From Oikopleura dioica (Eukaryota; Animalia; Chordata): a stretch of DNA of 64,000 bases. This document shows positions 6,173 through 43,000 of the stretch, piece after piece (positions within the stretch are counted from its first letter, which is position 1; each line of letters begins with the position of its first letter). The stretch lies in contig OU015567.1 in the NCBI GenBank assembly GCA_907165135.1, forward strand, positions 930,001 to 994,000, read 5' to 3'. Both the position numbers and the translations under genes were made by a program. Below the pieces are notes generated by a model. The model was not told the origin of the DNA. It searched no databases and was given only the letters and a program-made list of their open reading frames with translations.

Positions 6173-7563
6173 ATGTCCGACTCAAATCGAGATGTTGCGA
6201 ACGCTTATAGAAGTATCCTCAGAAATATCGGAGAAAATCCAGATCGAGAAGGATTGGTAAAAACACCAGCAAGAGCCGCAAAAGCGATGGAATTTTTCAC
6301 CAAGGGGTACAAAGAAGACATAAACGATATTATGAATGAGGCGATTTTCACGGAAAAAAGTGAAGAAATGGTGATCGTCCGGGGGAACGCTACTCTAAAT
6401 TACCAATTGCTAATGCATTGCCAATTTGGATAATTCATTACCAATTTTAGGTAATGCATTACCAAACTTTCCGAAAATGGCCAATTTTTTCAAGTCAAAG
6501 AGCCAGTTCGCGCTCCGCGCATGTTTGAAAGGATACTTTTGAGATTTATTTACAGTTTGTTTCCATTTTTCCGGAGTCCATTTTTCCGGACACTTTTCCG
6601 ATTATAAAGCATTTAAGTGGGGCACTGCAGAATTGACCTTGGTCCAATTTTCCGGACATTTTTCAAATTTTATTTACAGACCATCATTTTTTAATAAAAA
6701 ATGAACACTTGACGGTTCAATGTACTTCTTTTTGGGCACTCAGTGAGCAAATTTGCGAGGTTTTTAGCTAGAAGTTTATTTCGCGGTAAATCGACTTCTT
6801 GACTGAGAAGTGTCCGTTTCTCGAAAAAATTTAAGTATACTTGGTGGGACATGCATTTTTTTTCAGGGTACCCAATTTTCCGGACATTTTTTGGAAATCT
6901 GGGGACAAAGCTAGTCCGGAAAAATGGAATCATTCTGTACGTATTTTTAAGCAAAAAAATTGAAATTCTTGAAAAAAATTGGTACCAATTTTTGGTCATG
7001 CAGTACCGAAAATCTTTGGTAATTTAGACGAGCGCCCCCGTCGTCCGGGACATTCGACTCTACAGTCTATGTGAACATCATCTTGTTCCGTTTTACGGAA
7101 AGGCGTATGTAGGGTACATTCCAAATGGAAAGATTATTGGTCTGAGGTAAGCCAATTATATGTATGTATTGTCATTTTTGTCATTTAAGCAAAATTGCAA
7201 GAATCGTTGACCATTTCGCGCGAAGACTCCAAGTCCAGGAGCGGCTAACTCGTCAGATAGCCGAGACTTTGGAGAAACAACTTTCTGCTACTGGTGTTGC
7301 AGTTATGATCGAGTGCGAGTAAATATCAAATATGAGTTTTAACAGCGAGTTAAACCGCGTTCGAAATTGATTTTGTAGCATGCGTTTTGCAAAATTTCTT
7401 TTATTGCGGACATCTTTTAACCGATATTATAAGGCATATGTGTATGACAATGCGCGGCGTCGAAAAAGAGGGCTCGAAGACAGCGACATCCTGTATGCTT
7501 GGCTGCATAAAAGAAGATCAGAAATTACGCCAAGAATTTCTCTCGCTGGTGAAAAATAGATAG
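6173..7563 (+). CDS. GCH1: GTP cyclohydrolase I
   Basis: Exons give [60 protein letters not shown] and [15 protein letters not shown] introns at 7147-7189 and 7319-7433. The first interruption (6383-7039) is a TIR element. Confidence 0.95.
6383..7039. mobile_element. MULE-like MITE with 9-bp TSD inside the GCH1 coding sequence
   Basis: TIRs GGGAACGCTACTCTAAATTACCAA / GGGGGCGCTCGTCTAAATTACCAA (20/24). Flanks ATCGTCCGG (6374-6382) and GTCGTCCGG (7040-7048). Confidence 0.85.
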
Positions 7564-8471
7564 ATACTGTCTTTTATTGACACGATTAATTTTAACAATA
7601 AAGGGACACTTAAAATATTCTTTTGAAATTTGATCATCGTTGTTCAATGTTTTCAAGAAAATAACAGAAATTTATAATTTATTTTTTCTTGAAATTTTAA
7701 GCTAGGGTAAATCCCTTATAATTGAGCAATTTTTAACCAGAGGGCAATCCTAAGAGTGTGGGTCTTTATCTTGAATTTGCTCTTAACTTTTGCACGCAAC
7801 AGTGTTGGTTTTCTGAAAATTTAGACAGGGCATTGAAAATTCCAATTGACTCTGCCATTGCAAACAATTTACGAATGGTACCACGGCCCAATAACTCGTT
7901 GTAACGAAAAATTTATTGAAAAAACGAATAATTTGTCGCAGTACTTTTCTTTTTGAGCTTAAATCAGGTCAGTAAATCATACAAAACAAAGTTTTTCAAT
8001 CTCCATGGATACCAAAAGAAGTAATTATGATATTCCTTAGGTTTAAATACGATTGGTTAGGAAAAAGATAAGTCTTAGGGATTAGGGTTAGGCAAAAGAG
8101 CTTTCTGATCCAAGCCCTTTCTGTCCAAAGCCGCCCTTGGTAAGACCTTCGGGGAGGTTGCGGGGGCTTGGCTGTTTCAATGACTTATTTTTTGAATCAA
8201 CAAATTAGCCTGAACATTACGGTTTGGTTTACTACTTGATCAAAGTTTTTCACCTTGACAAATAATTCGTTTTTTAACGATACGACCACAAATACCAACG
8301 ATGCTACAAGCTCAACAAGGGCTAAGCATGATTAATACGATGAATTTGATGATGGGTCAAACTCAACAGAATCAGCAAAATTAGCTGTTGTAAATAGGTC
8401 AGATCCACTTTATTTCTTCAGATAGACATTTTTGGAAATTAATAAAAATTTCACTCATTTTTCAAGGGAAA

Positions 8472-9646
8472 TTAAGCATCGATGAGCATTTTTCCATTTG
8501 GCTGAGATCTTCCAAGGGCGATGAAGCAAAGAGAAAGGACTGATTCAGCGCCATCTCTGGCAGTTTTAGGCTAAATTTTATGTTTTCCTTGAAATACTCC
8601 TTTCTCACCTTTTTGCCAGGAACTCCAGCAGTCATATTAGTATCGCAGAATCCAGGGCAAGCGGAATTTATCAGAATATTTTTTCTCTCAGAAACCGACT
8701 TTTTGCCGTAGAGCCGGGGTTTGCCAAAATGGAAGAGCGCGGAAAGAATATGCACTCGGACGCCCCGTGTTTTTCCCGCCGCAGAAGAGGGTGCTCTAAA
8801 CTTTTGGGACGCAAAAAAAATGGGTTGGCGCGGCGTGAGCGAAGTATTCGGAAGAAAGCGGGCGCCCGAGCGCAAATTCTTTCCGCGCTCTTCCCCTTTT
8901 ACGAACCCCTGCCGTAGAGCCGAACGAGATTGTTAACGAGTAGCTTCGACATGTCGTAACCTTAAAATATAACTGTATTTTCAACAAGTATTTCTTTAAA
9001 AACCGATCATCGACGTTTGTTCTGGACTTGGCCAACCATCAGTTTGAGCCTGAGATGGGTTTTTCTGATCTTCGATGAATCTTCTGGCAATAGTATCTAA
9101 CTCGTCGAAAGTTGTTTTCGCGAGTGAACTTCTAAAGAAAAATTAATGGATAAGGTGATCAAAAACTTACGAAGATAGCTTTTGCCCATAATCAAAGACG
9201 TAATTCTCCTCAAAGATGTTCGGATTCGGGTTCAAATTGAGCATTCCTCGCAGTCCGAAAAAGCTGGAAAGGCAGACAATTCGAGCTCCCTCGCGAGCAA
9301 GAGGAAACAGTGATTTTAGAGCAGAAGAAATTCCAAAATAATTGACATCGATGGTCAATTTGATACTCTCAAATGATTTGTCATTTATTTCTGGCGCAAC
9401 ACCTGCGTTCAAAACCAAAATATCAAAAGAAGACGGTCCCATCTTCTCTGCAAAATTCAGCACACTTTCTTCGTTGCTTATGTCTAGCTTTTCGACTTGC
9501 AATTTACCGCAATTCTCTATTTCCGGGAATCCTTGCGGGTTTCTCGCTGTCGCCACAATTTTTTTAACATCTTTCTCTCCAATTAAAAGTTTGACGCATT
9601 CAAGTCCGATTCCACGATTTCCGCCGACGACGATTGCAGTTTTCAT
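8472..9646 (-). CDS. Short-chain dehydrogenase/reductase, carbonyl-reductase (CBR)-like
   Basis: VGGNRGIG Rossmann motif, LVLNAG, DGWP, catalytic YDMSK, INSACPGFCDTNM. Short GT-AG introns including 9132-9170 and 8571-8608. Interrupted by a TIR element at 8716-8909. Confidence 0.9.
8716..8909. mobile_element. 194-bp MITE with perfect 12-bp TSD inside an SDR exon
   Basis: 34-bp TIRs GGGGTTTGCCAAAATGGAAGAGCGCGGAAAGAAT / GGGGTTCGTAAAAGGGGAAGAGCGCGGAAAGAAT. TGCCGTAGAGCC at 8704-8715 and 8910-8921. Confidence 0.92.
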
Positions 9647-10223
9647 TTCTTTGTATTTTTTGCTTTTGGCTATTGAAAAAGCTCAAAAATCGATGGGCGA
9701 AATGAGAGAAATATAAAAATAAAATCGACGTTTGCCGTGCATCGAAGCTGGTTTACGCAATCATCAACATAAAATAATCGTTAAAAAGTTGATTTCATCA
9801 ACAACAAATTAACTCGACGAGAGTTGAACAGTCGGGAAAATAGTTGATATAAGTTGTGGCTTGGAGTTTTTTGAAAAGCAGAATCGTTAAAAGCTCGAAA
9901 CGCATCTTTTTGGAACTTGACTTTGAGAAGTGAGAATAAAGAGCTGGTTTAAAATTGCGTTAACATCGTTTCATGCATCAAATTTAATTGCAAATGTCAA
10001 GGACATATTTGAAAGTTTCGAAAGAGTTTTGACTGAAATTAACGAAATCGGTCGAAATGCACTTACAAGTTGGGGTTAACATTTCGTCCCTCGGTTTCCG
10101 ATAAATTTCCAAAACTGCCATTTCGCTTTGAAGATCCAAAAAGATTATCCGAATGCTAGCTTGAAATTTCTTAGATACTTCTCAACCAATTATCGCCAAG
10201 CATCCAGAGAAAATAGTTTTTAA

Positions 10224-11291
10224 GGGTACTATCTTCGATTTCCAGAAGAGGTCTTTTCAAAAGATATAAAATAGGTGATGGTCTAAACTTTGAAGTTCTT
10301 ACGTGCGATAAGAACTTTGTGTGGCCTAAACTTTGATTCTTCCCATGTGTGATTCTATGAGAAAGTGGCCTAATCTTTGATTCTTTCCATGTGTGAAAGT
10401 GGTCTAAACTTTGAATTTCTCCTGAGGCGCTCTGACTAGTTCCATGTGTCATCACCTTGAATGAAAACCGTAAACCTAATTGGTCTGCTTAAAGCGTAGT
10501 GGCCTTAGCAGGCAGTGCTCTAGTCACCGATGGCAGAAGCGCCTCCGGGGAAATTCAAAGTTTAGGCCACTTTCTCAAAGAGTCACACATGGGAACGATC
10601 AAAGTTTAGGCCACCCGAAGTTCTTATCGCACATACGAACTTCAAAGTTTAGACCACCACCTATTTTATAAGAATCGGTTATTAGAAATAGTTTCTTCAT
10701 TAGATTTTATGATTATACCTTATTGACAACTATTCGAAATTTCAATATATCTTGAGAAATGGCCCCTAGAAGTTTTTTCGAAAAAAAATTTTGAACTTCG
10801 ATTTCCTCGATCAAGTGCTTGTTCGAAAGCTCAGAGCAAGGGCAGTATGCTGGTAGCTGTATCGATCGCGACATCAAGATATTTTCGATTTTAGAGCCAA
10901 AAATGTGTCGCAAACTTTTAAAAAATGCTAAATTTTCGCAAAATCAGCGAGACACAATTTTCAAAAAATTATTTTTGTTATTTTTAGTTTTTCAATTAAG
11001 AAATCCTTCTGTAATTTTAAAGATTAATGTTCGAATTACAAATAAAAAATAAAATAAGACCAAGTTATCAGACTTGTTTTTGAGTTATTCAACCGTTTAT
11101 ATAGGCCATTTTGGCAAAGATAACCACTTCAAGCCAAAATTTAGCCGCTTTTCGGTTGAGCAATTGATAAACACCTCTGTAATAGTTATGATCTAGGGCA
11201 GATCTATTAAATGAGCCTATATGGACTCATCAATCATTCACAAGCTCCGAGGTATTCAAGGCTCAAGTTGGGGAAATCGAAGATAGTACCC
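10224..11291. mobile_element. TTAA-flanked non-autonomous element, GG termini (Kolobok-like)
   Basis: Perfect 20-bp TIR GGGTACTATCTTCGATTTCC; TTAA at 10220-10223 and 11292-11295. Confidence 0.88.
10265..10670. mobile_element. Nested foldback element with long TIRs built from CTAAACTTTGA subrepeats
   Basis: Arms of over 100 bp beginning TATAAAATAGGTG and ending CACCTATTTTATA. Confidence 0.75.
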
Positions 11292-11900
11292 TTAAGGTGT
11301 TGAATTGAGTGTTGATTTCTGACACGGAAGAACCTGTTTCTTCTATCTGTTTGATATTTTGTCCTGTAAAAAAGTTAAAAAAGATGACTCTCATTTAATA
11401 TAGTTGATTTTAAAGCAAAACTCATAAGAAATGTAATAGAATTGATTAAAGTCGGCTAAGTTGAACTTTCTTCTATCCAAAGCTTTTTATGGCCAGTACA
11501 ATCATTAAAAAGCCGGCTGCTTAATTTTTCGTAATTGACTTCGCCGATCGGGCAGACAAAAGTCGCGGGGACACTGCCTCAAATGCTAACAGGCATAACG
11601 TACAAAAAATAAACTTTTTATCTGTAAGAGATACAAAATTTAAACTTATGTAAAAATGATTTGTGATAATTAATAAATGATAAAATGAGCTTTTACAAAT
11701 TTTTGATGAAAAGTCAAATTTGTGTACGTAACGCCGACAAATGCTCGTTATACCGCCTCATTTTTCCAGATGTCAATATGTCTAATATTAAGATAAGCTA
11801 CACATCGGGAAATATTAGTTTGACACATTTTCATAATGAGAATAAACGAAAATGAGAAGAATAGGATCTCTGTTATTTTCGTCGATAGAAGCAAAGCGAA

Positions 11901-13879
11901 ATGAACACTACGGTATACTCTGATTTTTTGTCGCTTGGAAAGAACATCGAAGAGTTTGACCTGCGACACAATTTCGGCAATGTTGATAAATTTAGACCGC
12001 CATATAAGGTAACAGAAAAGATACTCACAAATCAGAAAAAAAAAATTAACTCTTCCTAGTGAAAATCGTAGGCCAGACTTTGTCTAATAATGAATTCAGC
12101 TTTCTGTCGGAATTGTTGTTTTTGGAGTTATTTCAAATCTCAGGAACTGGTCCGATTTTAAGACAGAAATTTTTAATGATGGATTTTCGAGTTCGCCCAA
12201 AAGTATTTTATACTTCATCTTCAAGGACAGTGGAGTCGTCAAAACAGCCCTTGCTCCGTATTATCTCAACAAGAGCAATCGCTCTCGAATGATCGATTTC
12301 AACTTCTTCTGGCTTTGCTCCTTCAGCCTTTTGGATTTGCTAGCGCAATCGCTGCTTCTTGGCCAGACTTTCCGCGGCGATTCGTTTTCCGGGCGACTTG
12401 AAACTTGCCAGATTGCTTTGAGCCTCACTCATTTTTCAAGAATAATGATCTCGATTCAAATATTTTTGATTGCTTGCTACAGACTCAATATTATGACGCA
12501 AGGACTGACGACGCGTAAACGAATGACGAAAAAGCTTATTGATCAAATTTTCTGCTTTCAGATCTTGGGTGGGTAAGTTTAACCCCTCCCGACTCGATTC
12601 TAGCCCCCCTTGCCTATCAACTTCGAAGATTTTTGTCCACTCTAGGCTTGGACAACCCTAGCCCTAAATTGATTTTAGTCTGCCCTAGAATAGGGTTATT
12701 CTAGCCCTAAAGTGATATTCGCCCACCCTAAGCTTTGGTTGTCCTAGCCCTAGAGTGACTTTTGCCCACCTAGGCGAGGGTGACCTTAGCCCTAAAGTGA
12801 CTCTCACGCACCGTAGGCTGGAGTGACCCTAGCCCTAAAGTGACTCTAGCCCACCCTAAGCTAGGACAACCCTAGCCCTCAAGACTTAAGGCTAAAGTTA
12901 ATTTTGCCCACCCTTGTTTAAGACTTATGTCGCCATGATCATAGCCGGATACGAAGCCTATGAAGCTGGCAAATTTGGATCAAGAGGCTTTTTCGACGAA
13001 ATCGGTACCTTCAGGGCCAAGTCAAAAGCTCTCCTCGAAATCTTCCTCCGTTATTCGGAATATTATTCCGACACTCCTCGAAACCTCTCCAATGATGCGC
13101 TCTTTGACTCCTACTGCTGGCCAAATTCGAAGAAAAATCCTTTGGTTTTCCGAGACTCTGAATATCGCTTCGCTTTCTATACGATTATTCTTCCAATAAG
13201 CGGACTGATGCTTTGCTACTCGAAAATTGTTTTCATGGTCCGAAAGAGCTACAAACTTATCGGTAACTTTTCGTCCTTTCATTTTGCCTAAAAAGTTTTA
13301 AGATAATGCAACTCGATTGACGAGGCAGAACAAACAACGACTCGACGTTGTGCTTACAAAAAAGCTGGTGCTCGTTTTTCTGACTTATGTTCTTACCATC
13401 GGTGCTTTTCGACTGCTGCGAGTGGTTATCGAGTACGAGCTTCCGATCGATTCCAGCACTCGAAATTTTATTATTGAATGGAGCAAGCTTCTTATTCTGA
13501 TCTGGGCTCGGCAACCTGTGTGGAAAACCTGAGTCAGGCTCCAGAGTAACCAAGAAGAAAGCTTCGAATCCTGACTCAGGTTTTAACACAGGTTTTCGAG
13601 CCTTAATCCAGATCGAACCGGCTGTGAATCCGTTTTTGTATCCAATGCTTCCGGGAAGCGACATTCGATACGCCTCAGATTTCTTTGGAATTGTCGGGTA
13701 AACAAGATGAATTCAAATTCTTCCAAAGAATAAATTAAGGAAACCGTTCAGATGGGGGAGTGATAAGATGCTCAAATTTACGAGAATGGTTTCGACGGTC
13801 CGCCGAACTGGATCAGCTCGATCTCATCAGACGTCGATTCAACAAGTCGAGCAACAAATTACTACATAAAATTCATTAA
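11901..13879 (+). CDS. Orphan rhodopsin-class 7TM receptor
   Basis: MNTT N-terminus; TM1 VFGVISNL; TM2 SLLDLL; ETCQ; TM3 IACYRL; TM5 FYTIILPISGLMLCYSKI; TM6 KKLVLVFLTYVL; TM7 EPAVNPFLY. Two introns coincide with TIR elements. Exon joins are inferred. Confidence 0.75.
12567..12913. mobile_element. TIR element with internal ~43-bp tandem repeats forming the TM4 intron of the GPCR
   Basis: TIRs GGGTGGGTAAGTTTAAC / GGGTGGGCAAAATTAAC (14/17); 5-6 copies of an AGCCCTAAAGTGAC... unit at 12642-12913. Confidence 0.65.
13504..13603. mobile_element. GGGCTC-family MITE (short copy) inside the TM7 coding region of the GPCR
   Basis: TIR GGCTCG(GC/AA)AACCTGTGT..AAAACCTGAGTCAGG. Flanks TTATTCTGATCT / TAATCCAGATCG (8/12). 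Confidence 0.82.
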
Positions 13880-14083
13880 ATATTGATTGTTACTGTAAAA
13901 TCGAATTTTTGTGAATAAAAATTTTTTCAAAATTTTTCATTTATTGCATTTTTAATCGACTCATGCGGCGCTTTAAAAAGTCCTCTTCTTTTTATCACCG
14001 AATTCCAGTCGATTTTGTGGTAGTTTGAGTGCTTCACATTCAGTGGATCCGATTGAAAATCGTAGTTGTAGATTTGATCTTAA

Positions 14084-14756
14084 GGGGGAGGTCGACGAGA
14101 ATCGGGATTTTTGTAACCAAAAATGCGGAAAAACCTGCTTAGATAGGCAAATTCTGACTTTTCACGTAGAAAGAAAAGGGTTTCAAAAATACAGCGGCGA
14201 AAACTAGAAAAAAAATTTTCTCGAAAAAATTTTGAAAAAATTAGGTCAAAGTGGGGGTGTCTCGTAACAAAAAAATGTCGAAAACGGGATAATTTTTTCC
14301 CCATCAAATACTGTTGATAGTAAGTTCAAACCCTTAAAAATACAGCGGCGACAATGAAAAAAGGGATGCTCCTCCTGAAAATTTTTTTACTGTTGATCAA
14401 AAATATCCGATTTTCCTAAAATTCATCATTTTTGCTCATTTTTCACTGCGAATTTTACAAAACTCGCAGAGACCCGTAATTTTTTTTTGTGCGTTATGCC
14501 TAATTATGACTAATAAACCATTAAAAATAAATATCTATCAAATAAAAATCGAATAAAGATTGTTTTTGGGTGAGATAGCCAACTTAACAATTTCTTAAAA
14601 TCTCGAATTCCAGACACAAAATCGAAAATTTTGTTAAAAAAAGTTGATCAATGCGCAAAAAGCTGGAGACCAAAAATGCTCCTTGTTTATTGAGGAATCC
14701 AAAAATATTACCAAAATTTTGAAAAAGCGAAAAAAAATTTCTCGTCGACCCCCTCC
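14084..14756. mobile_element. TTAA-flanked MITE, GG termini (Kolobok-like)
   Basis: TTAA 14080-14083 and 14757-14760; TIRs GGGGGAGGTCGACGAGAA / GGAGGGGGTCGACGAGAA. Confidence 0.85.
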
Positions 14757-14991
14757 TTAATCTACATGCATTTTTATATTAAAATGAGCATACCAATATA
14801 TTCATTTATATGCCGAACAACAGCTGGCGTCATCGAGTTCACAAGCGACCCAGGAGGATGAAGGAATCCATAGTGACATTCGCTGACGGTAAATATTTGA
14901 CACTGAGAGCTTTTAAATGCGTTTGTTGGTGAAATATGAATCATCGGTCATATTATATGACTCATATGGGAGAAAACAACAAGATATTTTT

Positions 14992-15282
14992 GGGTTGCGT
15001 CAGGAACCGGCAAAAATTTCGACAAATTTTGCGTAGGCAGCAGATCGGTTCTTGATCGACCGGTTTGCCGAATTCTGGTATCTGATTGGTTGAAAATTTC
15101 GACGCGAGATTTGTCGAAATTTTTCGGGGAGGTGTCTGGAACCGACAAAAAATTTCGACAAATTTTGTGTGGAAATTTTCAACCAATCATAAGCCCGGAG
15201 TCGGCTCACCGGTCAATCAACGGCCAAGTAGCCGCCAACGCAAAATTTGTCGAAATTTTTTGTCGGTCCCAGACGGCACCCC
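14992..15282. mobile_element. Two copies of a ~160-bp MITE family; the second (15126-15282) is inserted into the first in opposite orientation
   Basis: ~45-bp TIRs GGGGAGGTGTCTGGAACCGACAAAAAATTTCGACAAATTTTG. 8-bp flanks AATTTTTC / ATTTTTTC. Same family at 48383-48540 and 63836-63993. Confidence 0.85.
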
Positions 15283-15816
15283 ATTTTTTCTTGGGACCCA
15301 TTTTGTCCGGACCGATAATAATGAAATAATTATTCATCATTTTAATAATTGAAATGATATAGTAAAGGATCCTTTTTATTCTTTTTAAAAAGCCCTTCCA
15401 AAACAAAAAAGAAAGTTTTCATTCGACAAATGTTGTCTCGTTTCTCTTTTCTACTAAATCAGTTTGTCTCTCTATCTGCCTCAAAAAGACAATCCAGCCA
15501 AAGCGATCAAAGACATCGTGGAGCTAAGCGCTTCTCAGTCCACTCCCCGTCAATTCATTCATGCTTATGATCTACTGATTACATTCGAGCACAACAAGCA
15601 TATCAACTCATGCTTTTAAGCTTTTGCTAAAAACAGTTTTATTTTATCAACTTGATGAACCGACGAATTCTTTAAAATAATAATATTATTATATTAAAAA
15701 TATAACAGACGGGTCTTGGTTCTTGAAATCAAGCTGATAAACCCGCCCAATGATAAAATTTTTATGATTTGATTATTTTTTGATTGCTTCGGCAAGAGTT
15801 CTCAAAATTGTCAAAA

Positions 15817-16176: not shown

Positions 16177-16288
16177 ATTTTGAAATCAACGAAGAGAATA
16201 AATCTTAAAATCAAGGAGCATAGAATTTTTATTGAACAATTATTTACATATACATAAAAGGATCATAAACTGAATGAAATTTGTGGAG

Positions 16289-20031: not shown

Positions 20032-20216
20032 GTGGTCGGCGACCTGTGTAGAAAATCTAAGTCAGGGTCTCAAAGAGCTGAAAGTGAAAAGCTGCTCAGC
20101 GCTTTTTTTTAACGAAGCAGCTTTGCGGCTTTTTATATAAAAAAAACAGCTGCGCGGCTTTCGATTTCAGCTCTTTGTGACCCTGACTCAGGTTTTTTAC
20201 ACAGGGTGCCGAGCCA
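20032..20216. mobile_element. GGGCTC-family MITE
   Basis: TIRs match the family; internal AAGC(C/T)GC..GCGGCTT hairpins; flanks CACTCTTGATCT / AGTTCTTGAGGT (7/12). Confidence 0.8.
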
Positions 20217-21401
20217 AGTTCTTGAGGTACCGTCAATTCTAAGATTTGGGACATATCGCTTTTTGAGGGGTAAATTAGCATCAAAATATTATTCTTGCAT
20301 TAGGGACACTCATCCCTTCGCGAGAGCGATTAGCAGGGCCGCGTTTGAACATCAAAAGCCCGTGTCAATTGTTCCTCTCATGTGGATTTCGTGGATTTGT
20401 CAAAAAAAAAGGACAGTCGGGGTTCTCTTTTCGATTCATAAATAGAAGAATAAAAGGGCGGGTACTTTGTTGCATGAATTTTTGAATAAACGATTCATCC
20501 TCTTCTTTCGATTTTCGAGAAAAAATGATCGGGCAAATGCTAGATTAATAAATTGTTTATTGATTGTCTATCGTCATCCTGTCTGAAACACTAGAAAACT
20601 AATCCTCTTTTCTCGCATAAACATCACCCCGTGCCCCTTCAGTTGCAACCATTTACAGCTGGCGGATGTTTTTCCTCGAAAAAGTCGATCGAGCGAGGCC
20701 ACAATCCCTATCTGCTTGTTCCCAAAATTCAGTTTTGAAAATGTCGCGGATCAGGATCATCGCGCAGGAATCTGTCAATCCACTTTTTCGGCAAGTGGCT
20801 GAATTTGATTCTGTGGATGATTTTATTTTTGAGAATTGATTTTAAAAATCAGGATCCTGAAAGATTTTAAAATAAAAGCCGCGCAGCGGCTTCTTGAAAT
20901 CGTCATTTCAATCTTTACAAAAATTCCAGCGAAGCCGCTTGTTGAGGATTTTAACATAGCTTGCCGAGCCCTTACTGTAAAAAAAACCCTGTCAAAAAAG
21001 GAGTTACTGAACAAACGACGCAATTATTTCACTCATTGAGCTGTCAAAATCTAACCCCTCCTGATCCGCGAATCTCATCCCTTCAATTATCGCCTTAGCT
21101 GTCAAAGAGTCTGTCCTCGTTTTTAAATTTTCCTTTTTTCCACCTTCCTTGCGTCGAAATCGAAGGCGGGAAATTTCATTACAGCAGAAGCTCGCTAATT
21201 TTGGACATATTGCGAGAGTTGCTCGATGATTTCTATCACTGCGCCACTTCAAACGCGGCGCGTGGAGGGCGTCTTCATCTGGTGCGCTAAATAAATCATG
21301 CCGGGCGTTTTATCTTTGCGCATTTGTTGCCGATTAGGGAAGGCAGGTCAGCCATCGTCAAAGTCAAGATCAAAAAAATAGAAGTGATGAGGGTGATTAA
21401 T

Positions 21402-27485: not shown

Positions 27486-27741
27486 ATTTTTTTCTTACTT
27501 CAACAATATCTTCAATAAACATATAATATGTTACATATTCATTGTCGCTTCCCTGATGTCGATTCTCGAAATTAAATCAAATTTCTTAAGAAACAGAAAG
27601 TAAAAATATTCCTTGACAACTTGTATTTTTTCTAATGTCTTAGAGATGAAATACATCATTTAAAACATCTATTTTCTCCGCAACAATTCGGATTCTGTAA
27701 GAGTCGAAATATATTACTTTCTCTTAAAAATATATTATTAA

Positions 27742-30008: not shown

Positions 30009-33000
30009 ATGCCCCCGAATCTGACTGGTGGATTTGCGCCGCCGGAGCAGCACGGCGGCCGCGGAGTCAACCACAATTTGTCATATCGTCCGATTGATCC
30101 GAGTCAACATCGGATGAGACAACCGCCGCCTAGTTCTTACGGTTCCATTCCTGCTAGTGCCAGTTCCAACCCCGTGCAGGTAATTTTCGCGACAAAGAGC
30201 GTCCTGAGCGCAGGTGTCAAAATATTATCCCTTGAATTTGACAGGCACCGGATGGCCTTTGCAGGATAAGCCGCAGCTTCCCCCCTTTTTGCGAGACCAC
30301 ATGATTAATTTTGTAAATATTAAGGGAACCCTCAGCTTAAAAACATGATGATAGCTTGAACTTGTTTTGCAGGTGTTAATCACTAAAATTATTTTTGAAT
30401 CGATTTTTTGCACGAAACAAAGAAAGCCGCGGGCGGCTTTTTCAGATTTAATTTTTAAAAAAATTTAATTTTTATAAATTTCTATCAAAAAAATTTTTTT
30501 TCAAGAAAATAAATTTGAAAAAAAATTCTGAAAAAGCCGCGAGCGGCTTTTTTGTTTCAATTCACGTGAAGCCGCAAGCGTTTTTTTTTTCTGTTAAAAA
30601 TTAGCTTATTTTATAAAAAAAGTTTTACCGAAAAGAGCGGCCCAAATGGAGCACGTGATATTTAACGTTCATTGAATACACGGATTAGCCAAAAATCACG
30701 TTAGGTGCGCTCCATGCTCCTAATAGACGTGCAAATACAACGCCTTCCTCTTTTTGCAACCCCTGCCAATCTGAATTCAGGACGAACAGCGATTAAAAGA
30801 ACTGGCTGGAAGACTCGGCCTGCTAGAAAATCAGCATCGACAAACAATGGAGATTGTTTTTGGTCTCAAAAATCAGGTAAAAAGCGGAAAGAAATGATAT
30901 TAATTTTTTTCAAAACCTGAGTCAGGGCCTAAAATTACAAAATGAAAAGCCGCTCTGCGGCTTTTTTCAAAATGAAGCCGCGTAGCGGCTTTGCAAATAT
31001 AACTCTTTTGATCTATTTTAAATTCTAGCGAAGCCCCGCTGCGGCTTTTTATTCGAAAAAGCCGCTTTGCGGCTTTTCATTTTAGCTTCTTCAGACCCTG
31101 AGTCAGGTCTTCAACACAGGTTTCCGAGTCCATATTTTGCCCAGGCCTGATTTATTCGGCGAAATATATGAATTGAATATAAAATAAAAATTGTCCGTTT
31201 CCTTGTTTTGGGAAAATATCGTATCCGCTTGGAAATTTAATTGAGGCGGAAAAATATTGATATTAAAACTGCCAAAATGAGCAGCGAAAAAGTATAAACA
31301 GGAAGGATAATTCATTAATTTAAAAAGTGACCTCAGAAAATTGACACGGAGTACGGGACTTAGGGATGCAAATCAGACAGAAACCGCGAAATGAGATTAT
31401 GCTAATGCCCGCAGAAACAAGTTACTTTCAGCTTTTTTTTTTGGAGTTCTCTCTCAGGTTTTTGAGGAGCTTTACACACGTCGAAATTAATTTGGGGGAA
31501 TTAATTTAATTTTACACAGTTCTGAAGCGTCAAAGAAAAGTTACGGTTTTTATTTTGATATTCAATACAGTTCAACACTATTAATCTGTAACTAAAATAA
31601 TAAATTCAGCAATAATGATTTTTTGAATTTTTATCTAGAGTTACAGTGACATTATTGGAATATGATTTATCAACAATTTTATTAAAGTGAGGTTAACGAT
31701 CATATATCATCAGAATTTGAGTTTGCTGAATTTTACGAATTATTCTTTTTAAAAAATGAAGTTACAGTATGTTTAAATAAAAGCTTTATGGTTTTTTGAA
31801 GAAATTATCTAGAATTTTTTTTTTTGTTATCGAAAAATCGATGTCAATAAGAATATAAAAATTCTACAATTAAGCACTTTTTGTCTAATCCCTAAGTTTA
31901 GCTACAAAATTGAGTACGCGCTGAACTGAATTTCAAGAGGAAAAGGATTTGAAGGAAGCCGGAAGAAATCCGGCGCATACATTTTTCACGTTTGTAATCT
32001 TTCCTGTTATCCGTCCTCTTTGAAACTCGATTCTCCGGTAATCTAATAAAAAAGAAGACAGAAATTTAATTGAACGTCTGATTTTTTGTCTGAGAGTCTC
32101 TCTTTTTGACGACTCGGGCAATCGATCAAACTCAAGTATGTCCTCATTTCCGTCCTTGAGAAAATCTGAAATGAGAAAATTTGGACTCTCAATTTTCTCG
32201 GACGAGAAATTAAGAACCCCCGTCAGCTTTTTCGAAAAATCAAATTTCGGAATTTTAGATTGGACTTTTCGCCAAAAATTGACGAAGTTGCCCTAATTTT
32301 GCCAAAAATGTTTATTTTTCTTGGTCGAAAACTCCTCTTATCAAGTTTTTGAAGCAAGTCTAACCTGAGGAATCATTGAGAACCAAAACTATGGCATTTT
32401 TCAAAATTTCAATTTTTCGAAGGAAAAAGCTGACGGGGGTCCTTAAGGGTTCCTCCGCTCATTTCGTCAAATCATAATCCATCCTGATTTTCCTTCGTTT
32501 TTCTGTTGGGATTAACAAGAAAAAATCCGCAGCTACTTTTTTCCCTCTTCCGGCTTACGGGCACAAAGCTCAAACAATCCGGGAGCTTGGATAAACTCTA
32601 AAAGAAAATTTTTCAGAAGTCGATTTCTCAGCAAGAAAATCCAGAAATCGCCACCGCCGTCCGAACAAATGGCGAGCACATAAAACAGCTCCACGCCCGA
32701 TTTCGCGGCTTCGAAGAAGCGATTCAAACGAACCGAGGCCGCGATGAAAAAATTGAAACGCAACTCAATGCAATTCAAGATGTCGTACTCAGCGAGCTCG
32801 GAGATCCGCACAAAATGGAGAGTATGAAGGATTTGTCCAGAGTAAGTTTGGTTTTGAGACTTTGATTTGAGAGGTTGAGAAAGGGCGGGGGAGCAATTCC
32901 GCGCTGGAGGAGGCGTAATTAGCGTGGCACGTGAGGAATGTTTGTTTAGAACCTTTACGTTCTTAGCTCTTGCACTTATTTTGAAGCTTTTTGATTGAGG

Positions 33001-36000
33001 ATTCATGAATCTTATTAATTGGCCTTCTTTACACGAGGTGATCTATTAACACTCAGACTAGTCCTATCGGTCAAAATACTTGTTTCGGCTCGGTTTCAGA
33101 AAATGCGAAAAAACTTCATCCCTATTCAAAAAAATTGCTCTTACGGTCTTTCAATAATTTGAATACATTCTAGAGAATCGGAAGTTTCAGTTGCAGTAGT
33201 TGTCGGTGGAGTATTTCGAAAAAGTCTAAGTAGACACAAATTGTGACATAATTCTGACTGGATTTAGTTATCATATTGTCATTACGATAAGGAGCATAAT
33301 AAATAGAAAATTATACCTAACTAAGGCTGTTTGCTAAATGCGATATCGATGTTTAAAAATTGTTTTCAGATTTCCTTACTCTGTAATTTCTGAACCATTC
33401 TTAAACAAAGTGAGGTTATGGCCCCTGGAAAATACCTCTAGAAAAAAAATTGCATTTTTAAAAAAGACAATAACTACTATGGAAAAAACGCGGAACAATG
33501 AGCATTCTATAAAAATTATAGTAATTCCAGTGCTCTAAATTCGCTTCATAATGATTCCTCTTGACCAGCTCCCCTTGCTCCTCCCTTATCAATATGTATT
33601 AGGCCATTGTAGTAAGTACAAAAACGCTCCATCGTAGTATCCCGCCGAGATAGACATTCTAGTGCCGGCGGCAATGTTCAGAGCGAAACCGCGTTTGGTA
33701 TTTGCGTTTTTCGTTCTCATTGGCCCATGACACCTTCTTTTTATCTTTTCTCAACCCTTTAGTAGTCCGGTAGAAACATTTAGTATATATTTTCGACTCA
33801 AAAAACGATTCAGAATTGCGATAGAATTCATGCAGAGCTAAACGAGCTGAGAACAGAGCTGGACGCGGGAAATTATCAGGTAAAACAAACTTCTATTTTC
33901 GGCTCGAAAAATATTTTTTTCAATTATTAATATAATATAATATAATATAATATAATATAATATAATATAATATAATATAATATAATATAATATAATATAA
34001 TATAATATAATATAATATAATATAATATAATATAATATAATATAATATAATATAATATAATATAATAATATATCAATTCTAGGGACCAAAGCTTCAAATC
34101 CAAGTGATGCCGAACACCGACGATGGCAAAAACTTCGTTACGCTCTCCGAGCTGCGTAAATACATCATGATGGCGGCGGACGAAATGTCATCAACGATGA
34201 AAACCTACCTCGACGACAAAATCGACACGATGGAACACGACTTGTCCGACATCCGGAAAGAGGTCAAATCCGAGCGCAAGCGAAATGAACAGCTTGAGGC
34301 TCGGCTTCATAACTTCGAATCGCAGCAGAATAGTATGAATGGAATGAATAGAAGGACGAATTCGGGGCAATACTCACCTGAGCTCGTGAAAAAGCGTTCT
34401 TTTGACCAGTTGGTCAAGGAAGTCGATCAGTGCTTCTCAGAACTTGGCCGGCAAGTCAAACGAGAAGCGAAAGGAAGAGCAAACATAGAAGAGCAGCTCG
34501 ATCAAATTCAAAACAACGGCAACTTCCCCCAGCCAAGAAACGACCCTGCAATGGATCAGCGAATTGCAAAGGTAGAAGCTGCCCTGGCGGACTTGAAAAA
34601 GGACACGAAGAAGGAACGAAAGAGGATCGAAAAAGCCCTCGAAGCCCAAGCGAATTCCGGACCGGATATGACAGCTGTTGAAGACACCATCCAGTCGATC
34701 ATCACCGATGTCGTCGAAGAACTGACCACCAACGAAGCCCGATTGTACGAATCCGTCGAAAGGAGAATGAAAGACCTGGAAGAAACAGTCCAATCAGAGA
34801 CAACAGCTCGTTCGATTTCCGAACGAAAAGCAAACAGCGAGCTCCGCCGGGTATCAGCTTTAGTCGATGCTGGAAAAACCGGCCTTCGACGAAATTCTAG
34901 CGCTGAAGAGACCACAAAAACGATCGACCTCCCTCTTGGTGTTGATGAGTTACGAGTGACCGTGGCTTCTCTAAAGGAGCAACTGGGCTTGTTTGAGGAA
35001 GAAAGCGCAGAAGCAAAGCGTCAATTCGACACTTCTAGCGCTAGTTTCAAGAAAGACCTCGAAGAATTCCGAAAATCGCTGCACAAAACTGAAAACAACG
35101 AGCGAGAAGTAGCACGAAAAATCGAAAAGATCGAGAAGGGCCTGGTAGGAGCTCAAAGTGCCGCTCCTGGCCGTACGGTCTCTATTGGACCGGATACTGG
35201 CGATGTTATGAGCTTGAAGAAACAATTGAAGGACTTGGAGACGAAGATGGACAAAATCAAGGCGGAAAATGAGGCGAGTCCGAAGTCGAGTCTGAACGAC
35301 AACAAAATTTCACCGGCAATAGCGAAGATGAATGAACAAGTGTTAGATCTAGAGACTTCTTTGACAGCTCTAAGGAACTTGTTTCTTTAAATAATTCTTA
35401 AAACAATAAGTCTTAATAATTTTGTTCGAATATTTATTTTCTATACCACACTTGATTGAGAGAATAACTTAACCCTCAAGACATTTGTCAAGCTTAATAA
35501 TAGATGCTGCCATTTATAAATGAGTCAAAAGAAATCAAGTGGACGCCGACCGAAATCGCCTTGATAATATCCGCACTGAAAGTCTTGGCAAAATCAAAGC
35601 AGTTCGCGAAGAAGTTCGATTAATCAAAACTTGCCAGCCAAGCTCAGAATCCAAGGGGCCTAAAGTCGATGTTCTTGTCTCCCAGGATGTGTTGAAAAAA
35701 GCTGACGCAAGTGAAATCACCAAGGACGATCTCGAACGAATCTTCGCAAAGATTGAAAAGCTCGAAGCAAAAAATATGACTCCTGGCGTTTCTCTTGGGC
35801 AAACTGAACTGATGAGAGAGTTTGAATGCTTGAGCGATGAGAATCAGCGACTTTGGAGAAGTTTGACGAAGCTCGAGGAAGAAATCAAACTCGGCGCGAA
35901 AGCAGGAGAAGAATGTTCTGATGAAAATTCACCCGGGGCCCTCGCGAATGCAATAAATCAGTTCCAGAAGCAAATTGGCACGCCAGATTTGACAGGCGAG

Positions 36001-39000
36001 CTAGAAATCAGGCTCAAAAAGATCGAACGCGAGTTGAGCGAGAAAACCGACCGCGGGACGGATCGTCTTTGGCGCCATCTCTCGAATCTTGAAGAGCAGA
36101 TTACACGACGCCATGGCGAAAATGACGAGCGACTCAGCAAACTTGAAGCGATTCCGAACACGGATTCTAGAGAAAACGCTTCGGAAATCTCCGTCGCTAC
36201 CACTTCCGAAAGCTCTCTAACTGAAAACAAGAACAGCCAATTATGGAAGGAAATCGGAAGTCTGAAGGCAAAAATGTCCGAAATTATAGGTCGCGATTTG
36301 CTGGATTTGAAGAAAAAGCTGAATACTTCCGCTCAACGGGCTGATGTTAGAAGAATTATTCTTGACATCGAAAATCTCAAGGTTGATTCTTTGTCGCCAA
36401 TGGAGGAGAAGATCAAAAACCTGGAGAAGGAAATATCCGATTTGCCGAAAATCAACCCATCTGATCTAACCGCGAAAAAGCAGATCCCAATAGGGGCTCC
36501 AAAAGTTTCAGGGCTGGGCTCGGCAAACTGTTTGGAAAACCTGAGTCAGGGTCGAAAGATCTCTTATGAATTTAATAGCAGATAGGACAGGTCATTATTA
36601 AAAGCCGCTTCGCGGCTTAATTTTCAAAAAAGCCGCTACGCGGCTTTTCACAAGAGAGTTTTTAGACCCTGACTCAGGTTTTCGACACAGGTTGCTGAGC
36701 CCTTTTCAGTCATTTCCGACAGCAATCGCGAAGAATGGGAAAGAACCTTGATCACCAAAGATGATATGAAGGAATTCGAAGAGAAGCTGAACAAGTTCAG
36801 GGATTATTGGGTCGCGGAGAGCTCGAAATATGCGAAAATCGGAATGCTGGAGATATTTACTGACGATTTGAGCGGACTGAAGGCGCAGGTGGATGATCTG
36901 CTCGTGAATGAGAGGGGAACGGTGAAGGCGCTCGAGGATCGAATGGAAATTCTTGCTGAAGATTTGGAAGAAAATATGACCAACGCTAGAACTGAAGGTA
37001 TACTTTCCGCTTACTTCTTTATTTCAACGATTTTTCTAGATCGCAACTACATCGAGCGCCAATTAAAGACCATCGAAGTCAACGGCGTCGCTGCCCATGT
37101 CATGGAAGATCTTGCCAGCCTCCAGCACGTCGTCTCTAGAATTTCCGCCCAGCTTGAAATGCTCAAGGATACTGACGCCTCGCTCACAGAGACTCCTACA
37201 GTTTCCGAGCAAACACCTACTCCTTATTCGGAAGAACAAAGCGCTGAAACCTCTGAAACAGCTTCCACAGTGACTCAAACTGTCAGCCTTCCCAAAGTGC
37301 CGATCGTCCATGCAATCAACAAGGAAGCAGTTATTGCCGAAGTCAAAGCATTCGTCGAAGGAAAACTGAAATACTTCAACCCCGAAAATGGCTCCCAAAA
37401 TGAAGGGTTGCTGAAAATGGTTCGCGAACGAGTCAGTCGATTGGAAGATGAAGTCGCCTTGGCTCGAAAAGAGGATCAAACAAACTGCGACAACTTGAAG
37501 CGTCAAATTTTCGCTCTCCGAGATGACCTGGAAAATCGAAAGCCAGAATTTGCCCTCCCTTCGGTTTCTTCTCAAAAAGCACCGGAACTCGCGCCGATAA
37601 AGGAGAAACTCGCAGCTATCGAAGAAAACAACGCGGTTCTTGAGAAATCGATTCTTTCGCTAGTCACAAAAATGGATTCCAAGATCGACGGGATCGACAA
37701 CAAGTGCGAACGAACTGTCAAGTCTCAAATGGCGCTCGAAGAACATGTGGATAATCTAGAAGACAGAGTTACGGAAAATCAACATGGAGTGACCTCCGTG
37801 TCTACTCCCAGCATCCCACCTGCGTTTTTCGACCTTTCACCTGAAATCTTCGATGATAAGCTGGAACTGCTCACTGATAAGGTCAAGGAGCTCATGTCCG
37901 ACAAGAAGATTCTCTCCGACCGTCTTGATATCGTCGAAGAAGAGCTAGAAACGAACGACCGATTTTTGATCGAATCAATTTCCGCCGAAAAAGCACAAGA
38001 AATTGCCAAAAGAATTGCTCAAAGCGAATCGAAAAAGCTCGAAGAAGAACTGAAATCGATTCATGAAAAGTTTCAAAACTTGAAAATTGATTCAACTAAA
38101 CAAGAGCCGGAGTTGAAGAGAAATGAATCGGAAGAGATTCCGAAGTTTATCAAGAGTGTTTCGATGGGTGAAATTGGTGGTACTGGCAATTTGGATTACG
38201 AAAAGTTGATTGACGAAGTGAAGGAAATTGCCGAAAAAGGTACTGCCAATAACGTATTAAAGAATAAGACTGAGACTAGAAAAGTTGTCGAGAATTAGGG
38301 AACCATAATTTTTTTCTTTCATAAAGAAGTAAATATATTTTTAATGTATACAATCGCGAACATTAAGCTAAAACGTCGTCATAAAAGTGGATGCCATCAG
38401 GAGCAGTAGCTAGACACATCTTTTTTAAATTTTAACAACTAACCCCTAGTCTATTCAGCAACAAAAGACCTGACCTTCCACGACGAGATGTTCGACTTGG
38501 TACAGAAACGTCTTCAAGCTCTAGAAACCCACATTTCCGAGCTCCCCTTGGCCCCTGAATCTTCCCCAACTCAAGCATCTCCCTCATCGGAAGCTCTATC
38601 GTCTCTAGAAGAAAAACTCGGAGACCTAGAAAAGTCCACATCGCAAAATTCCAAGAAATCCGAAAAGATGTCAAAAGAACTCGATGATCTCCGCTCCAAA
38701 TTAAAGAAGAACAACAATTCGCTGACGAGAAAACTCGGAGACGTCGAGGATGAAATTCTGTCAGAACTGGCAAAGACGAAAATTCTCGTCGAATCGGCAA
38801 AAACTCACAAAGAAGTTCAGCGATCATTCGATCAAGTCGGCGCGATGGATCTGCCGAAAATGGCACCCGATGTAAAAACGGGATCGCCGATCAGCATGCA
38901 GGAGAGCTTCAAGCTCAGAAACCAAATTCAGGACATGTGGAAATCGTTGCGACTCGATATTGCCCATCGAACGGCGAATTTGGAAAAATTGTCCAAAAGT

Positions 39001-39762
39001 GAGCTTCTCAATATGCGCGAAAACTTGAGGCAGGAAAGAAAGAGAACGACGAAAGAAATCACAGAGGTAAGAGACCAAAAAAGCGCTAGAATTGAACGAT
39101 TTCAAGGTCGCTGAAATCCTCGAAGGAGTCGAGAAACAAGTGAACTTCCAACGAATCGACTTTGAAAAAGAAAAAGCGAAAGAAACCGCCCGAAGATCGA
39201 TGGAAATGCAAAAAGTGCAGAACCAAATTCGCGATTCTGAGAAACGCGTAAGTCCTCCTTGATCTCAAAAAGTTCTCATCGAAATTCTAGATGAGATGCA
39301 CAACAGATGCCATCGCAAATCTCGTGACAGAAATAAGAGATGAACAAGCTGATGATCGAATTTACATGCGAGCTGAGCTCAAACAGGTTTCCACCAAATT
39401 CAGGCCCTTTTCAACAAAAATTCTAGAGCCAAACAGAAGTTCGGCGCCAGGCAATGGCGTTCGAACGCATTCACGGTCGCCAGAATCGCTGTGAAAACGA
39501 CATGACCGACATGAACTCGAAAATAAAAGACCTTTCAAGATCATTTGTAAATATGGCGACGGATTCTAGAGCAACGATTACCAATTCCTTCGTCAAGCCG
39601 TCTGAATCAAGGTGACTTTCTTCTCTCCTTTCTTCTCCCTGAATGAATTTTTCTAGGTCCGAATTATCAACAAGAGCTGAAAACAGTGGACTCCTCAACT
39701 ACCGCTCCTCATTTACCGAATTTTCAACCGACCGGCTTTCTGAAAATTCTAGCAATGCGTGA
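30009..39762 (+). CDS. Very large coiled-coil protein of unknown family (may be two genes split near 33.6-34.1 kb)
   Basis: Heptad-rich exons at ~30777-30876, 32618-32840, 34083-35380, 35532-36511, 36710-36997, 37040-~38250 and ~38460-39066, plus four short 3' exons; stop 39760-39762, AATAAA at ~39789. Confidence 0.65.
30912..31131. mobile_element. GGGCTC-family MITE, left TIR truncated, intronic
   Basis: AAAACCTGAGTCAGGG ... CCCTGAGTCAGGTCTTCAACACAGGTTTCCGAGTCC; four AAGCCGC/GCGGCTT hairpins. Confidence 0.75.
32214..32442. mobile_element. TTAA MITE, purine termini (Kolobok-like)
   Basis: TTAA 32210-32213 and 32443-32446; TIR G(A/G)ACCCCCGTCAGCTTTTT. Confidence 0.85.
33931..34065. repeat. 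(TATAA)27 microsatellite
   Basis: Perfect pentamer run ending ~15 nt before the acceptor at 34082. Confidence 0.97.
36516..36702. mobile_element. GGGCTC-family MITE forming an intron of the coiled-coil gene
   Basis: GGGCTCGGCAAACTGT...ACAGGTTGCTGAGCCC; flanks GTTTCAGGGCT / TTTTCAGTCAT (7/11). Confidence 0.85.
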
Positions 39763-40058
39763 ACTGCTTCATTTTCTTCTACCGTGAAAATAAACTAACA
39801 ACTAATCAATCATTTATTTGAACTTTTTCTTCTTGAAACACCGTGTTCGCTTCTTTGCTTTTGGTCAAAACGAGGTCCCGAATCACGCGGAGACGGAAAG
39901 AGTGGAAGAGTGAGAAGTTTACAACCTGCGCGGCGTAGCATATTGGCTGAATGTGACCAGCTTTGCCCGCGGCGCCTCGTTGCGCGATCACTTCTACGTT
40001 CGGGGCAATCTCGGCCCATTTCGAACAACACTTAGAGAAATACATATTGAAAGAAAAA

Positions 40059-43000
40059 ATGATCGGAGACGAGCAAACTAAGAATTTCGATGAATTGATT
40101 GAACATGAGGATGTTTTGGGAGATGAAAATGAAGTAAAGAAAGAGTCTTTATTTATTCTCTATCATAATTCGAGATAACGTTCGTAACTTTAGTTTTTTC
40201 TTATTAAGGACCCCCCGTCAACAATTTTTTCTGAAAAAATCGAAAATTTCAAAATAGCCATATTTTGGTTTCTCAGTCTGCCTGGAAGTTTAATACATAA
40301 TAGAAACTTGTTCGGAGCACTTTTTGACGAATAAAAATCTAAAATTTAAGAATTATTAGGTCATTTTCGTCATTTTTCGGTGAAAAGTCCGATTCTCAAA
40401 CGCGATTTTGAGGGTGTTAGAGTCGAGATAGACCCCCAAAAAATGGAGCCTCAAAATCGTTTTTAAAAATCGTTTTAAAATCCATTTCCGGGGTCAAAAT
40501 TTTGAAATTCCGAAAATTGATTTTTCGAAAAGTGTTGACGGGGAGGGGGGGGTCCTTAACGCCGGAACGCATGAAATAGATTTTTCCCGGAACGCATATC
40601 GACCCATTTTTGGGTGAGAGCCCGTAGACCCGTTTTCTTGTTTACATCAACCAATATTTTATCATAAATATGATCTTCAGACCCCGAACTACAATAAATT
40701 ATTAGATACATGAAATATCTCTCATGTGTTGTTTTAACACTAGAAAATGACGATGTTTGAAGCCATATTTCAGCGCCTTACCCAGAAATGGGTCGATATG
40801 CGTTCCGGCGTTAATTTTATCAATATAATCCAATGAATATTATTCAAGAATTTCTTGTTTGAAGATGCGAACAGAAGTATTAATTATTCACACAATAAAT
40901 ATAAGCAAAAAAATAAATTTCTACGATTGAAATCTCAATTATGGTTTCGAAAATTTTCGATAATATATTGTCAATTTACTCTTTATATATAAACATGAAT
41001 AAAATCTCCGGAAAAGGTCGAAGTAAAAGAAGAAACAAAGTCGCCAACTCCCGAAACAGCCAAAACTGACGTCCAGATTTACCAAGAAAAGCTGATCCGT
41101 CTGGAGCGTCACTTTTCCGAAAAGGTCAAAAAGCTGCAGTCGAAGATCAGCGAGTTCATTCCCGAAATACTGAAGACGCAGTTGGACGACTTGCTTCTCA
41201 AATTCCACAACGAGATCTCAGAAGAGTTTCAAAAGCTTAAAAATCCGATTTCAGGCGACATGGCGCCGCCGGCTACTCCGACTCCCACAACGCCATCTCC
41301 CAAATTGGGTAAGCCCAGTTAGTTTGTAAATAGAAACAGCTTCCAAAATTAAATCAGTGCGATGATTCTTTTTTATTTGCCGTTTGAGATAAATATACTT
41401 TCATTGTTGGAATTATCTTCTTCGTGTTCCTCGTGAACTGATTTCAGATGGCTACGGTACTATTTTTGCCTTATGAAAATAGAACAAAAAGAAAAAATGA
41501 ATCCTAGTTAGGTTAAACTCTAGAAATTAGTTTGAGAGGGGAGAGCACTTGTTGGGGCATCTCTTAGCCAATCAAAAGCCTGTATTTTCTCAATTGACCA
41601 ATAATTGACCAGCTCCCCTTTCAAAGAAAGATACTCTTGTCCCTCCTGTATAAAATGGCTCCGAAGATAGTGGCCCTCCTTAAAATCAGTAAAAATAAAA
41701 TTTCAAAGGCATTCCTTTCGAATAAATCGGATAATAACCCGATCGCATTGCGCTTCCATTTCTTCAAAGTCCATTTCATAATCCCTCTTTATTCGCATGA
41801 TTATTTGTCCTAAACAGATTCAATCAAAATATCCTCGTTCGTTTTCGAGCTCTCTTACTTGACATACACATCTTGTAAAGCTCCTGAAGATTGTAAATCG
41901 TAAACGAGCTGCTGAATAAAAAGAAAGAAAAAGCAAGAAAACACGCATCGTTTGAACTTCTTTCTTTTTTTTTCTGATTTTAATTAATTTGGACTTGAAA
42001 TCTCGGCTAGTCGAATGATGCATTTTTTATTTTGTGGATGGATATGAATTTCGATTATCTCTCACACTTTTGCGTAAATTTTTAAATCTGTGAATAATGT
42101 TGGCACTCAGCCTCTCTTAAAAACTCACCGTAGCAACAAGTTCAGTTGAGACCGCAACCATCGCCGCTGAAGTACCGATCCTCACCGCTCCGACGCTCGT
42201 CTGTCCCACCATCCAAGCTGCTCCGATCATTCAGCAAATCCTTCCAACAGCATCGGCGATCAACGCTAGTCAGCAAAAAGTGGTGATTCCCCCGCCCCAA
42301 GTCGAAAAAATCATCGTCAACGGACAGGCCGGGCTCGGCAATCTCCGTAAAAAACCTGAGATACAGTCAAAAAGTCTTGTATGAAAAGCCGCATAGCGTC
42401 TTTCTTAAAAGAAAAGCCGCGAAGCGGCTTCGCCAAAAATCAGTTCAATTCAATTTTGGCAAAGCCGCTTCGCGGCTATATTTTTTGAAAAAGCCGCTAC
42501 GCGGCTTTTTAGTCAAGACTTTTGGCCCCTGGCTAAAGTTGGTGAGCCCAGTTGATAGGAAACAAATGTTGTTGTCCAGCCAAATGCTGTTCTCGTCCCT
42601 AAAGACACAAAAGTCCTTAGCGTACCGAAAGATGCTAAGGTCGTGGAGCCCGTTATGGCAACTTTGATAAGAAAGCGCGATCCAAAAGGTGGAGGCAAGA
42701 TTACGAAAATTTCGAATGCAAAGGTGGCGCAAGTAAAAGTTGTGCCGATAAGAAAAAGTGCTCGAATCCCGAAGCCAAGGGATGATACTGAACAAGAAAA
42801 GACAGGTAGAATATATTTTCGCCAAGAGAATGACCAGTAGATGTTTAAATTCTTTTTCTATTGTAGAGGATGAAATAGCCTACTAATCAAAAATAAGGAG
42901 AGATAAGCACCCCGGAAAGAAGTAACCCTGAGCCGCCAAAACTTGACCTGCCACCGGAAGAAAGTACCTTCGAAGTCGATTATGACTGTAAGTAAAAAGT

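Follow-up and report, generated by a model that had tools for sequence, protein, structure and literature searches.

Inverted-repeat transposons with G-run ends in coding exons of Oikopleura dioica, probably removed as mostly non-GT introns

In a window of 64,000 nucleotides of Oikopleura dioica (assembly OKI2018_I69, Okinawa lineage; chr2, OU015567.1:930,001-994,000), we found short inverted-repeat transposons with G-run ends seated within genes, and we consider it probable that those sitting in exons are tolerated as they are spliced out, with the genes remaining under selection and the new introns mostly beginning with dinucleotides other than GT. A reading made earlier from the letters of the window alone (the sequence-only reading) had proposed transposon-born introns at six sites, all of which were taken up here: one each in a GTP cyclohydrolase I gene (GCH1), a short-chain dehydrogenase gene (SDR), a coiled-coil gene and a zinc-finger gene, and two in a putative G-protein-coupled receptor gene, at its transmembrane segments 4 and 7 (TM4 and TM7). 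The observation behind that proposal was partly confirmed and its interpretation partly supported. Read directly from the DNA were the insertions, the corresponding element-free sites in relatives, the open reading frames and the footprint of selection; from these we infer splicing, the exact junctions given below being candidates.

As had been claimed, a G-run stands at the start of all six intervals and none can be read through, an in-frame stop being met in each of the six. Of the six elements with terminal inverted repeats said to lie in intact open reading frames, five proved real, with lengths of 99–658 bp, but the TM4 interval turned out to be an old intron swollen by a minisatellite. 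Inverted ends are clear in the GCH1, SDR, TM7 and coiled-coil elements and weaker in the zinc-finger element; being short and non-coding with terminal inverted repeats, the five resemble miniature inverted-repeat transposable elements (MITEs) in these respects. The proposal that insertion had interrupted once-continuous exons was borne out at the SDR, coiled-coil and zinc-finger sites by uninterrupted relatives and at GCH1 by a protein profile, but not at TM4. Relatives compared were the sequences L003 and L004 for SDR, L005 for the receptor, L006 for the coiled-coil gene, and L007 and L009 for the zinc-finger gene. Elements are given here without a strand.

The SDR gene (8472-9646, minus strand; exons 9646-9171, 9131-9004, 8960-8910, 8703-8609 and 8570-8472) carries a 194-bp element at 8716-8909, just past the YxxxK motif and with 53-nt arms matching at 83%, and its 159-residue exon matches the annotated O. 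dioica protein g4123 (OKI2018_I69 chr2) at 99%, the homology search naming g4123/g4124. After removal of the element and one duplicate of the flanking repeat, a frame of 282 codons (stop included) remained. The exon is uninterrupted both in the syntenic L003, at 80% nucleotide identity, and in the more distant L004, with the three GT-AG introns conserved. The comparison of empty and filled sites for which the sequence-only reading had called could also be made within other samples, since DNA contigs of two of them contain an element-free form in which exactly 206 bases are missing and 11-12 letters at the joint agree with either side. The GCH1 gene (6173-7565, plus strand; exons 6173-6382, 7049-7146, 7190-7318 and 7434-7565) is split between exons 1 and 2 by a 658-bp element (6383-7040), without which, and without one duplicate, there is an intact frame of 188 residues. 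The Pfam profile PF01227 is matched over 2-63 and 64-95 on either side of this element with no gap, so that this exon, too, was presumably once continuous. DNA contigs of two other samples contain the GCH1 element, with no empty form among those listed.

At two further exonic sites, candidate junctions could be placed that would remove the element without a scar. The coiled-coil gene holds a 187-bp element (36516-36702; 42-nt arms at 88%) flanked by reading frames of 353 and 541 codons, and the relative's genomic contig is continuous at the site, its protein P0017 reading ...GAPKVS|VISDSN... across it; a candidate GG-AG intron at 36512-36709 would restore the relative's coding sequence exactly. 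In the zinc-finger gene, with C2H2 fingers downstream at 43248-43457, the 219-bp element (42331-42549) interrupts an exon that is continuous in the marine-metagenome contigs L007 and L009, and a candidate GC-AG intron at 42328-42558 is collinear with these relatives, with no gap. It could be argued that the elements had landed in pre-existing introns and did not create them, which is what we found for the TM4 interval and for a further copy, at 44399, lying in a GT-AG intron; for TM7, moreover, no empty relative was found. That explanation is nevertheless improbable as a general one, because exons are continuous in the relatives at SDR, coiled-coil and zinc-finger, and because the candidate introns at 36512-36709 and 42328-42558 contain nothing other than the element with the 3-4 bases that precede it and the 7-9 that follow it.

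Further evidence came from the duplication of the GCH1-SDR segment, copies of which (L001, L002 and L010) lie at chr2 ~871-940 kb in the same genome. Both elements were present at the same sites in all three GCH1-SDR copies that were aligned, and the insertions are thus older than the duplications. Once the element and one duplicate are taken out, all exons are open and the frames complete in three of three copies. Changes among these copies amounted to 3.6% at non-exon positions, 1.9% at synonymous and 0.55% at non-synonymous positions (p 2e-11 against non-exon), non-synonymous changes thus being some 7-fold rarer than non-coding ones, and in the exons downstream of the elements the non-synonymous figure was 0.47% (p 2e-5). 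Several of the differences between copies recur in short-read contigs of other samples, which shows that they are not assembly errors. This is the pattern expected from selection on the full-length protein, and it implies that the elements are removed in frame from the mRNA. The tandem copies thereby offer a natural test, in which the elements are young and the genes yet evolve like working ones. The versions of the elements differ between copies: the SDR element is 171 bp longer in L001 and L002, and the GCH1 element lacks 396 bp of its interior (6566-6961) in L001, as it does in a contig of another sample, this stretch having been either gained by nested insertion or lost by internal deletion after the duplication.

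The main rival explanation holds that the elements are insertional knock-outs, merely tolerated in redundant or dying duplicates, above all in the tandem GCH1, SDR and receptor copies, and to this we assign a limited though real probability. Several results weigh on its side and against the removal of the elements by splicing. Segmental duplicates are piled up in the region, and the receptor copies in L001 and L002 have decayed, showing a 1-bp deletion and a truncation, so that dead duplicates do occur here. An SDR contig that is ~13% divergent and free of the element was found in the same DNA samples, its depth in X4 being close to that of a single copy and in X1 about half as great; this is probably a paralogue, and a spare SDR copy may therefore exist. 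In the RNA-guided public annotation, each of the four SDR models (g4116, g4121, g4123 and g4124, of 203-208 residues, the GCH1-SDR module being tandemly duplicated) stops short of the element, and neither a GCH1 nor a receptor model is given in the window, although multi-mapping reads of near-identical copies were perhaps discarded, which makes such gaps weak evidence. Two RNA runs, X10 and X11, compared over window positions 6100-12099 (GCH1 and SDR), gave no junction reads, with only conserved pieces of GCH1 matching; carrying the same species label but matching at <90% identity, these runs stem from another cryptic lineage. In older runs with the same species label, guessed to be RNA, none of the sampled words was present. 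When GCH1 was taken alone, 2 synonymous changes stood to 5 non-synonymous ones, the signal of selection coming mostly from SDR. Against knock-outs stand the strong deficit of non-synonymous changes among the element-bearing copies, downstream exons included, the open exons in all three copies and the very long reading frames around the coiled-coil element.

As a separate observation, the divergence of X10 and X11 fits deep cryptic lineages within O. dioica.

Junction enumeration at GCH1 and SDR gave a less tidy outcome, adding to the points that favour knock-outs, as no exact canonical junction exists at either site and no junction of the kind beginning with G and ending with AG (G-start/AG) restores the original protein. 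For SDR the mildest in-frame choice, GG-AG, would turn GKK into GR, and for GCH1 every AG acceptor adds at least 3 residues within a conserved strand. The sequence-only reading had proposed that the G-run offers GG or GC donors and the far end of the element or the duplication an AG, the AG of the duplication staying in register as acceptor in the older cases; both ideas fit the coiled-coil (GG-AG) and zinc-finger (GC-AG) sites, where the relatives' coding sequence would be regained, but fail at SDR and GCH1, the two youngest elements, which have no in-register AG. A splice-site pair split between element and target, with a scar-free mRNA, is accordingly permitted by the sequence at the former two sites and not at the latter two. 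One way around this would be hairpin-guided excision of the RNA at borders other than G/AG, as in Fritillaria or in the non-conventional introns of euglenids, whereby removal could be exact even at GCH1 and SDR. The selection seen on these two genes in spite of their having no exact G-start/AG solution would suit such excision, as would the very stable RNA hairpins of the elements, which bring both ends together (for TM7, -60.7 kcal/mol with a z of -8). We regard it as very unlikely, however, given that the non-canonical introns of O. dioica are reportedly mostly of the G-start/AG kind, and that in-frame G-start/AG solutions with small changes to the protein are available at both sites.

The mechanism we favour, removal by splicing, would run as follows. 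Non-autonomous DNA transposons, namely a multi-copy family whose ends read GGGCTCGGCAA and two elements each seen only at its own locus, inserted into coding exons in the Okinawa lineage, and the U2 spliceosome of O. dioica, known to accept G-start donors other than GT, would most likely remove each as an intron. In the coiled-coil and zinc-finger genes, the donor would be a G lying 3-4 bases ahead of the G-run of the element and the acceptor an AG lying 7-9 bases past its other end, in the downstream duplicate of the target, so that the mRNA would return to its pre-insertion sequence. At GCH1 and SDR, removal would alter a few residues or need unusual borders. A more tentative extension is that G-run-ended transposons serve as a standing source of the ~11% of introns that start with G but not GT, and that the GCH1 and SDR insertions are still removed in frame despite having no in-register GT/AG. 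If this were true, the splicing machinery, perhaps helped by the hairpin of the element, would neutralise exon insertions almost at once.

In the receptor gene, which Pfam did not confirm as a seven-transmembrane family member (the label rests only on an NPxxY-like motif), the two sites had different fates. The interval at TM4 (12568-12922 on the plus strand, previously placed at 12567-12922) was rejected as a transposon-born intron. Its inverted match extends over 7-8 nt only and lies inside a minisatellite at 12637-12883, called by Tandem Repeats Finder as a 43-nt unit repeated 5.8 times. The sequence-only reading had named an orthologue that lacks the element and already has an intron as a finding that would speak against it, and L005 is such a case at TM4: this codon boundary is occupied there by a GT-AG intron of 46 nt, with a 3′ end homologous to the supposed inverted end in the window, where the extra length is the minisatellite. 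The TM4 interval is therefore an older, ordinary intron expanded by a minisatellite, outside the transposon process. The frame is kept there by GG-AG junctions only; a canonical GTAAGT inside the interval was tried as donor and rejected, being out of frame and reading GCAAGT in a 95%-identical relative.

The TM7 element (99 bp, 13504-13602, in the TM7-coding part) could be removed in frame as GC-AG at 13506-13611 or as GG-AG at 13504-13600. No empty TM7 site was found in the relatives. L005 was considered as one and rejected, as the corresponding exon end is immediately followed there by a decayed member of this family, itself interrupted by a nested insertion of 1.4 kb, the upstream exon of L005 still being open. 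Sharing of the element between the window and L005 indicates an old insertion that predates the split of the lineages. At ~1720-2556 of L005, within its copy of the element, we also noted a nested element of ~0.8 kb with ends CTAGGGTCGGCACCGACC, beyond which the contig is perhaps chimeric.

The TM7, coiled-coil and zinc-finger elements start with GGGCTCGGCAA (5 matches against 0.5 expected) and cross-match one another, forming what we call the GGGCTC family, of which there are 6-7 copies in the 64 kb. It sits at coding junctions in three genes, the other copies being non-coding or within an existing intron: one at 20032-20215, outside recognised exons; one at 30912-31131, without its 5′ end; an isolated end at 20971; and one at 44399-44513, where a sulfotransferase-like gene has an ordinary GT-AG intron (44369-44541) that encloses the copy. 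The introns across the window are in general short and GT-AG, as expected for O. dioica. For the SDR and GCH1 elements no further copy was found in the DNA read here, the duplicated gene copies excepted, although contig depth hints at a few additional copies of the GCH1 type. Instead of the four MITE families that had been counted, there are thus one multi-copy family and two elements seen only at their own loci, the fourth not being a transposon. A scan of the JGI metagenomes for the inverted end of the GGGCTC family gave 0 hits, and exact look-ups of three reading frames of the window gave no match.

Two side observations concern small elements of the region. A short GC hairpin (AAAGCCGC, 3-4 bases, GCGGCTTT) is repeated within many of them, as at 30939-31083, 42380-42520, 20090-20170 and 20870-20895. 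A further small element at 15126-15282 likewise ends in G-runs (GGGGAGGTG...) and is flanked by a T-rich repeat of ~7-8 bases, which suggests that G-run termini are common among local elements.

Flanking duplications of coding sequence, said to measure 9-14 bp, were firm at two elements and weak elsewhere. That of SDR is exact over 12 of 12 positions (8704-8715 and 8910-8921), and that of GCH1 is exact over 8-9 bases, TCGTCCGG(G), at 6375-6383 and 7041-7049 (permutation p ~0.002), its boundary being blurred by the G-run. The duplications of the GGGCTC family (TM7, coiled-coil, zinc-finger and the 20032 copy) match at 7/9 to 7/11 and are singly near chance (p 0.04-0.27), a Fisher combination of the four giving ~0.015; for the coiled-coil element, a duplication of 6-7 bp agrees with the sequence of the relative as well as one of 11-12 bp does. 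Long duplications can accordingly be claimed for two elements and the 12-bp length for one. Ranking the elements by duplication identity, as had been done to obtain a series of ages, proved unreliable, since the TM7 insertion predates the lineage split and the SDR and GCH1 insertions are younger than that split and older than the local segmental duplications. The notion of an undescribed transposase drawn from a target-site duplication of ~12 bp is likewise a guess, that length being seen at one element. The usual duplication lengths are 9-11 bp for Mutator-like elements and 8 bp for hAT, and the SDR duplication exceeds both; this perfect 12-bp repeat might point to an unclassified transposase. 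The GCH1 repeat of 8-9 bp fits either superfamily, non-autonomous members of which also have long inverted ends, but no transposase or autonomous partner was seen in the DNA read here.

The candidate junctions are plausible for O. dioica, given how common non-GT/AG introns are in its genome together with the G-start/AG kind mentioned above. Their share is ~11% in the OKI2018_I69 assembly (PMC8008620). Transposon-born introns in larvaceans are already published, and the gain of the present analysis lies in detail, not in kind, with the test of selection on duplicated, element-bearing genes as a useful extra. Transposon insertion has been tabulated among the origins of introns in Oikopleura (PMC3443670, Table 1, citing Denoeud 2010), and in Fritillaria borealis, as far as accounts of that work convey, most introns are non-canonical and linked to MITEs (Henriet et al. 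2019, via PMC11282704, PMC13326754). The O. dioica and Fritillaria cases are alike in MITEs within coding sequence, lineage-specific intron positions and non-GT termini (candidate introns in O. dioica), and a permissive U2-type spliceosome with no minor spliceosome. They differ in that Fritillaria introns, according to the same accounts, mostly have AG/AC or AG/AT termini and carry a YAY triplet at each border, whereas the candidates here are GG/GC...AG with repeats of 8-12 bp. With the Introners of Micromonas, Aureococcus and others (Huff 2016; Gozashti 2022, PMC9860276) the candidate introns at the coiled-coil and zinc-finger sites would have in common that the end of the element, or its immediate neighbourhood, provides one splice site and the duplicated target the second; Introners, however, are overwhelmingly introns, with hundreds of copies, while the GGGCTC family also occurs in non-coding DNA and inside an existing intron, and its exonic copies are only probably spliced. 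Should the elements indeed be spliced, they would provide dated cases of transposon-driven intron birth in a chordate and would tie the end sequence of a transposon to the class of non-canonical donor used.

Some further features of the region were noted. GCH1 and SDR (possibly sepiapterin-reductase-like), together with, in L001, two PTPS genes, are clustered at window positions 5000-13400 and in L001, L002 and L010, and tandem duplication of this pterin segment has occurred at least three to four times, with an identity of 96-99% between copies; it looks like an amplified pterin (BH4) pathway, unusual for an animal. A 400-bp inverted-repeat element with a TA-type flank (10265-10670) does not occur in the contigs of two further DNA samples, where the joints skip 400 bases with 1-2 letters shared; it is therefore polymorphic as an insertion and belongs to another, Tc1/mariner-like kind. 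There is also a larger form, in which 1081 bases (10215-11297) are skipped. Finally, a 627-residue open reading frame at 1435-3318 (minus strand), which has CCHC zinc knuckles at its end and no counterpart in the public annotation, may be gag-like and derived from a retroelement.

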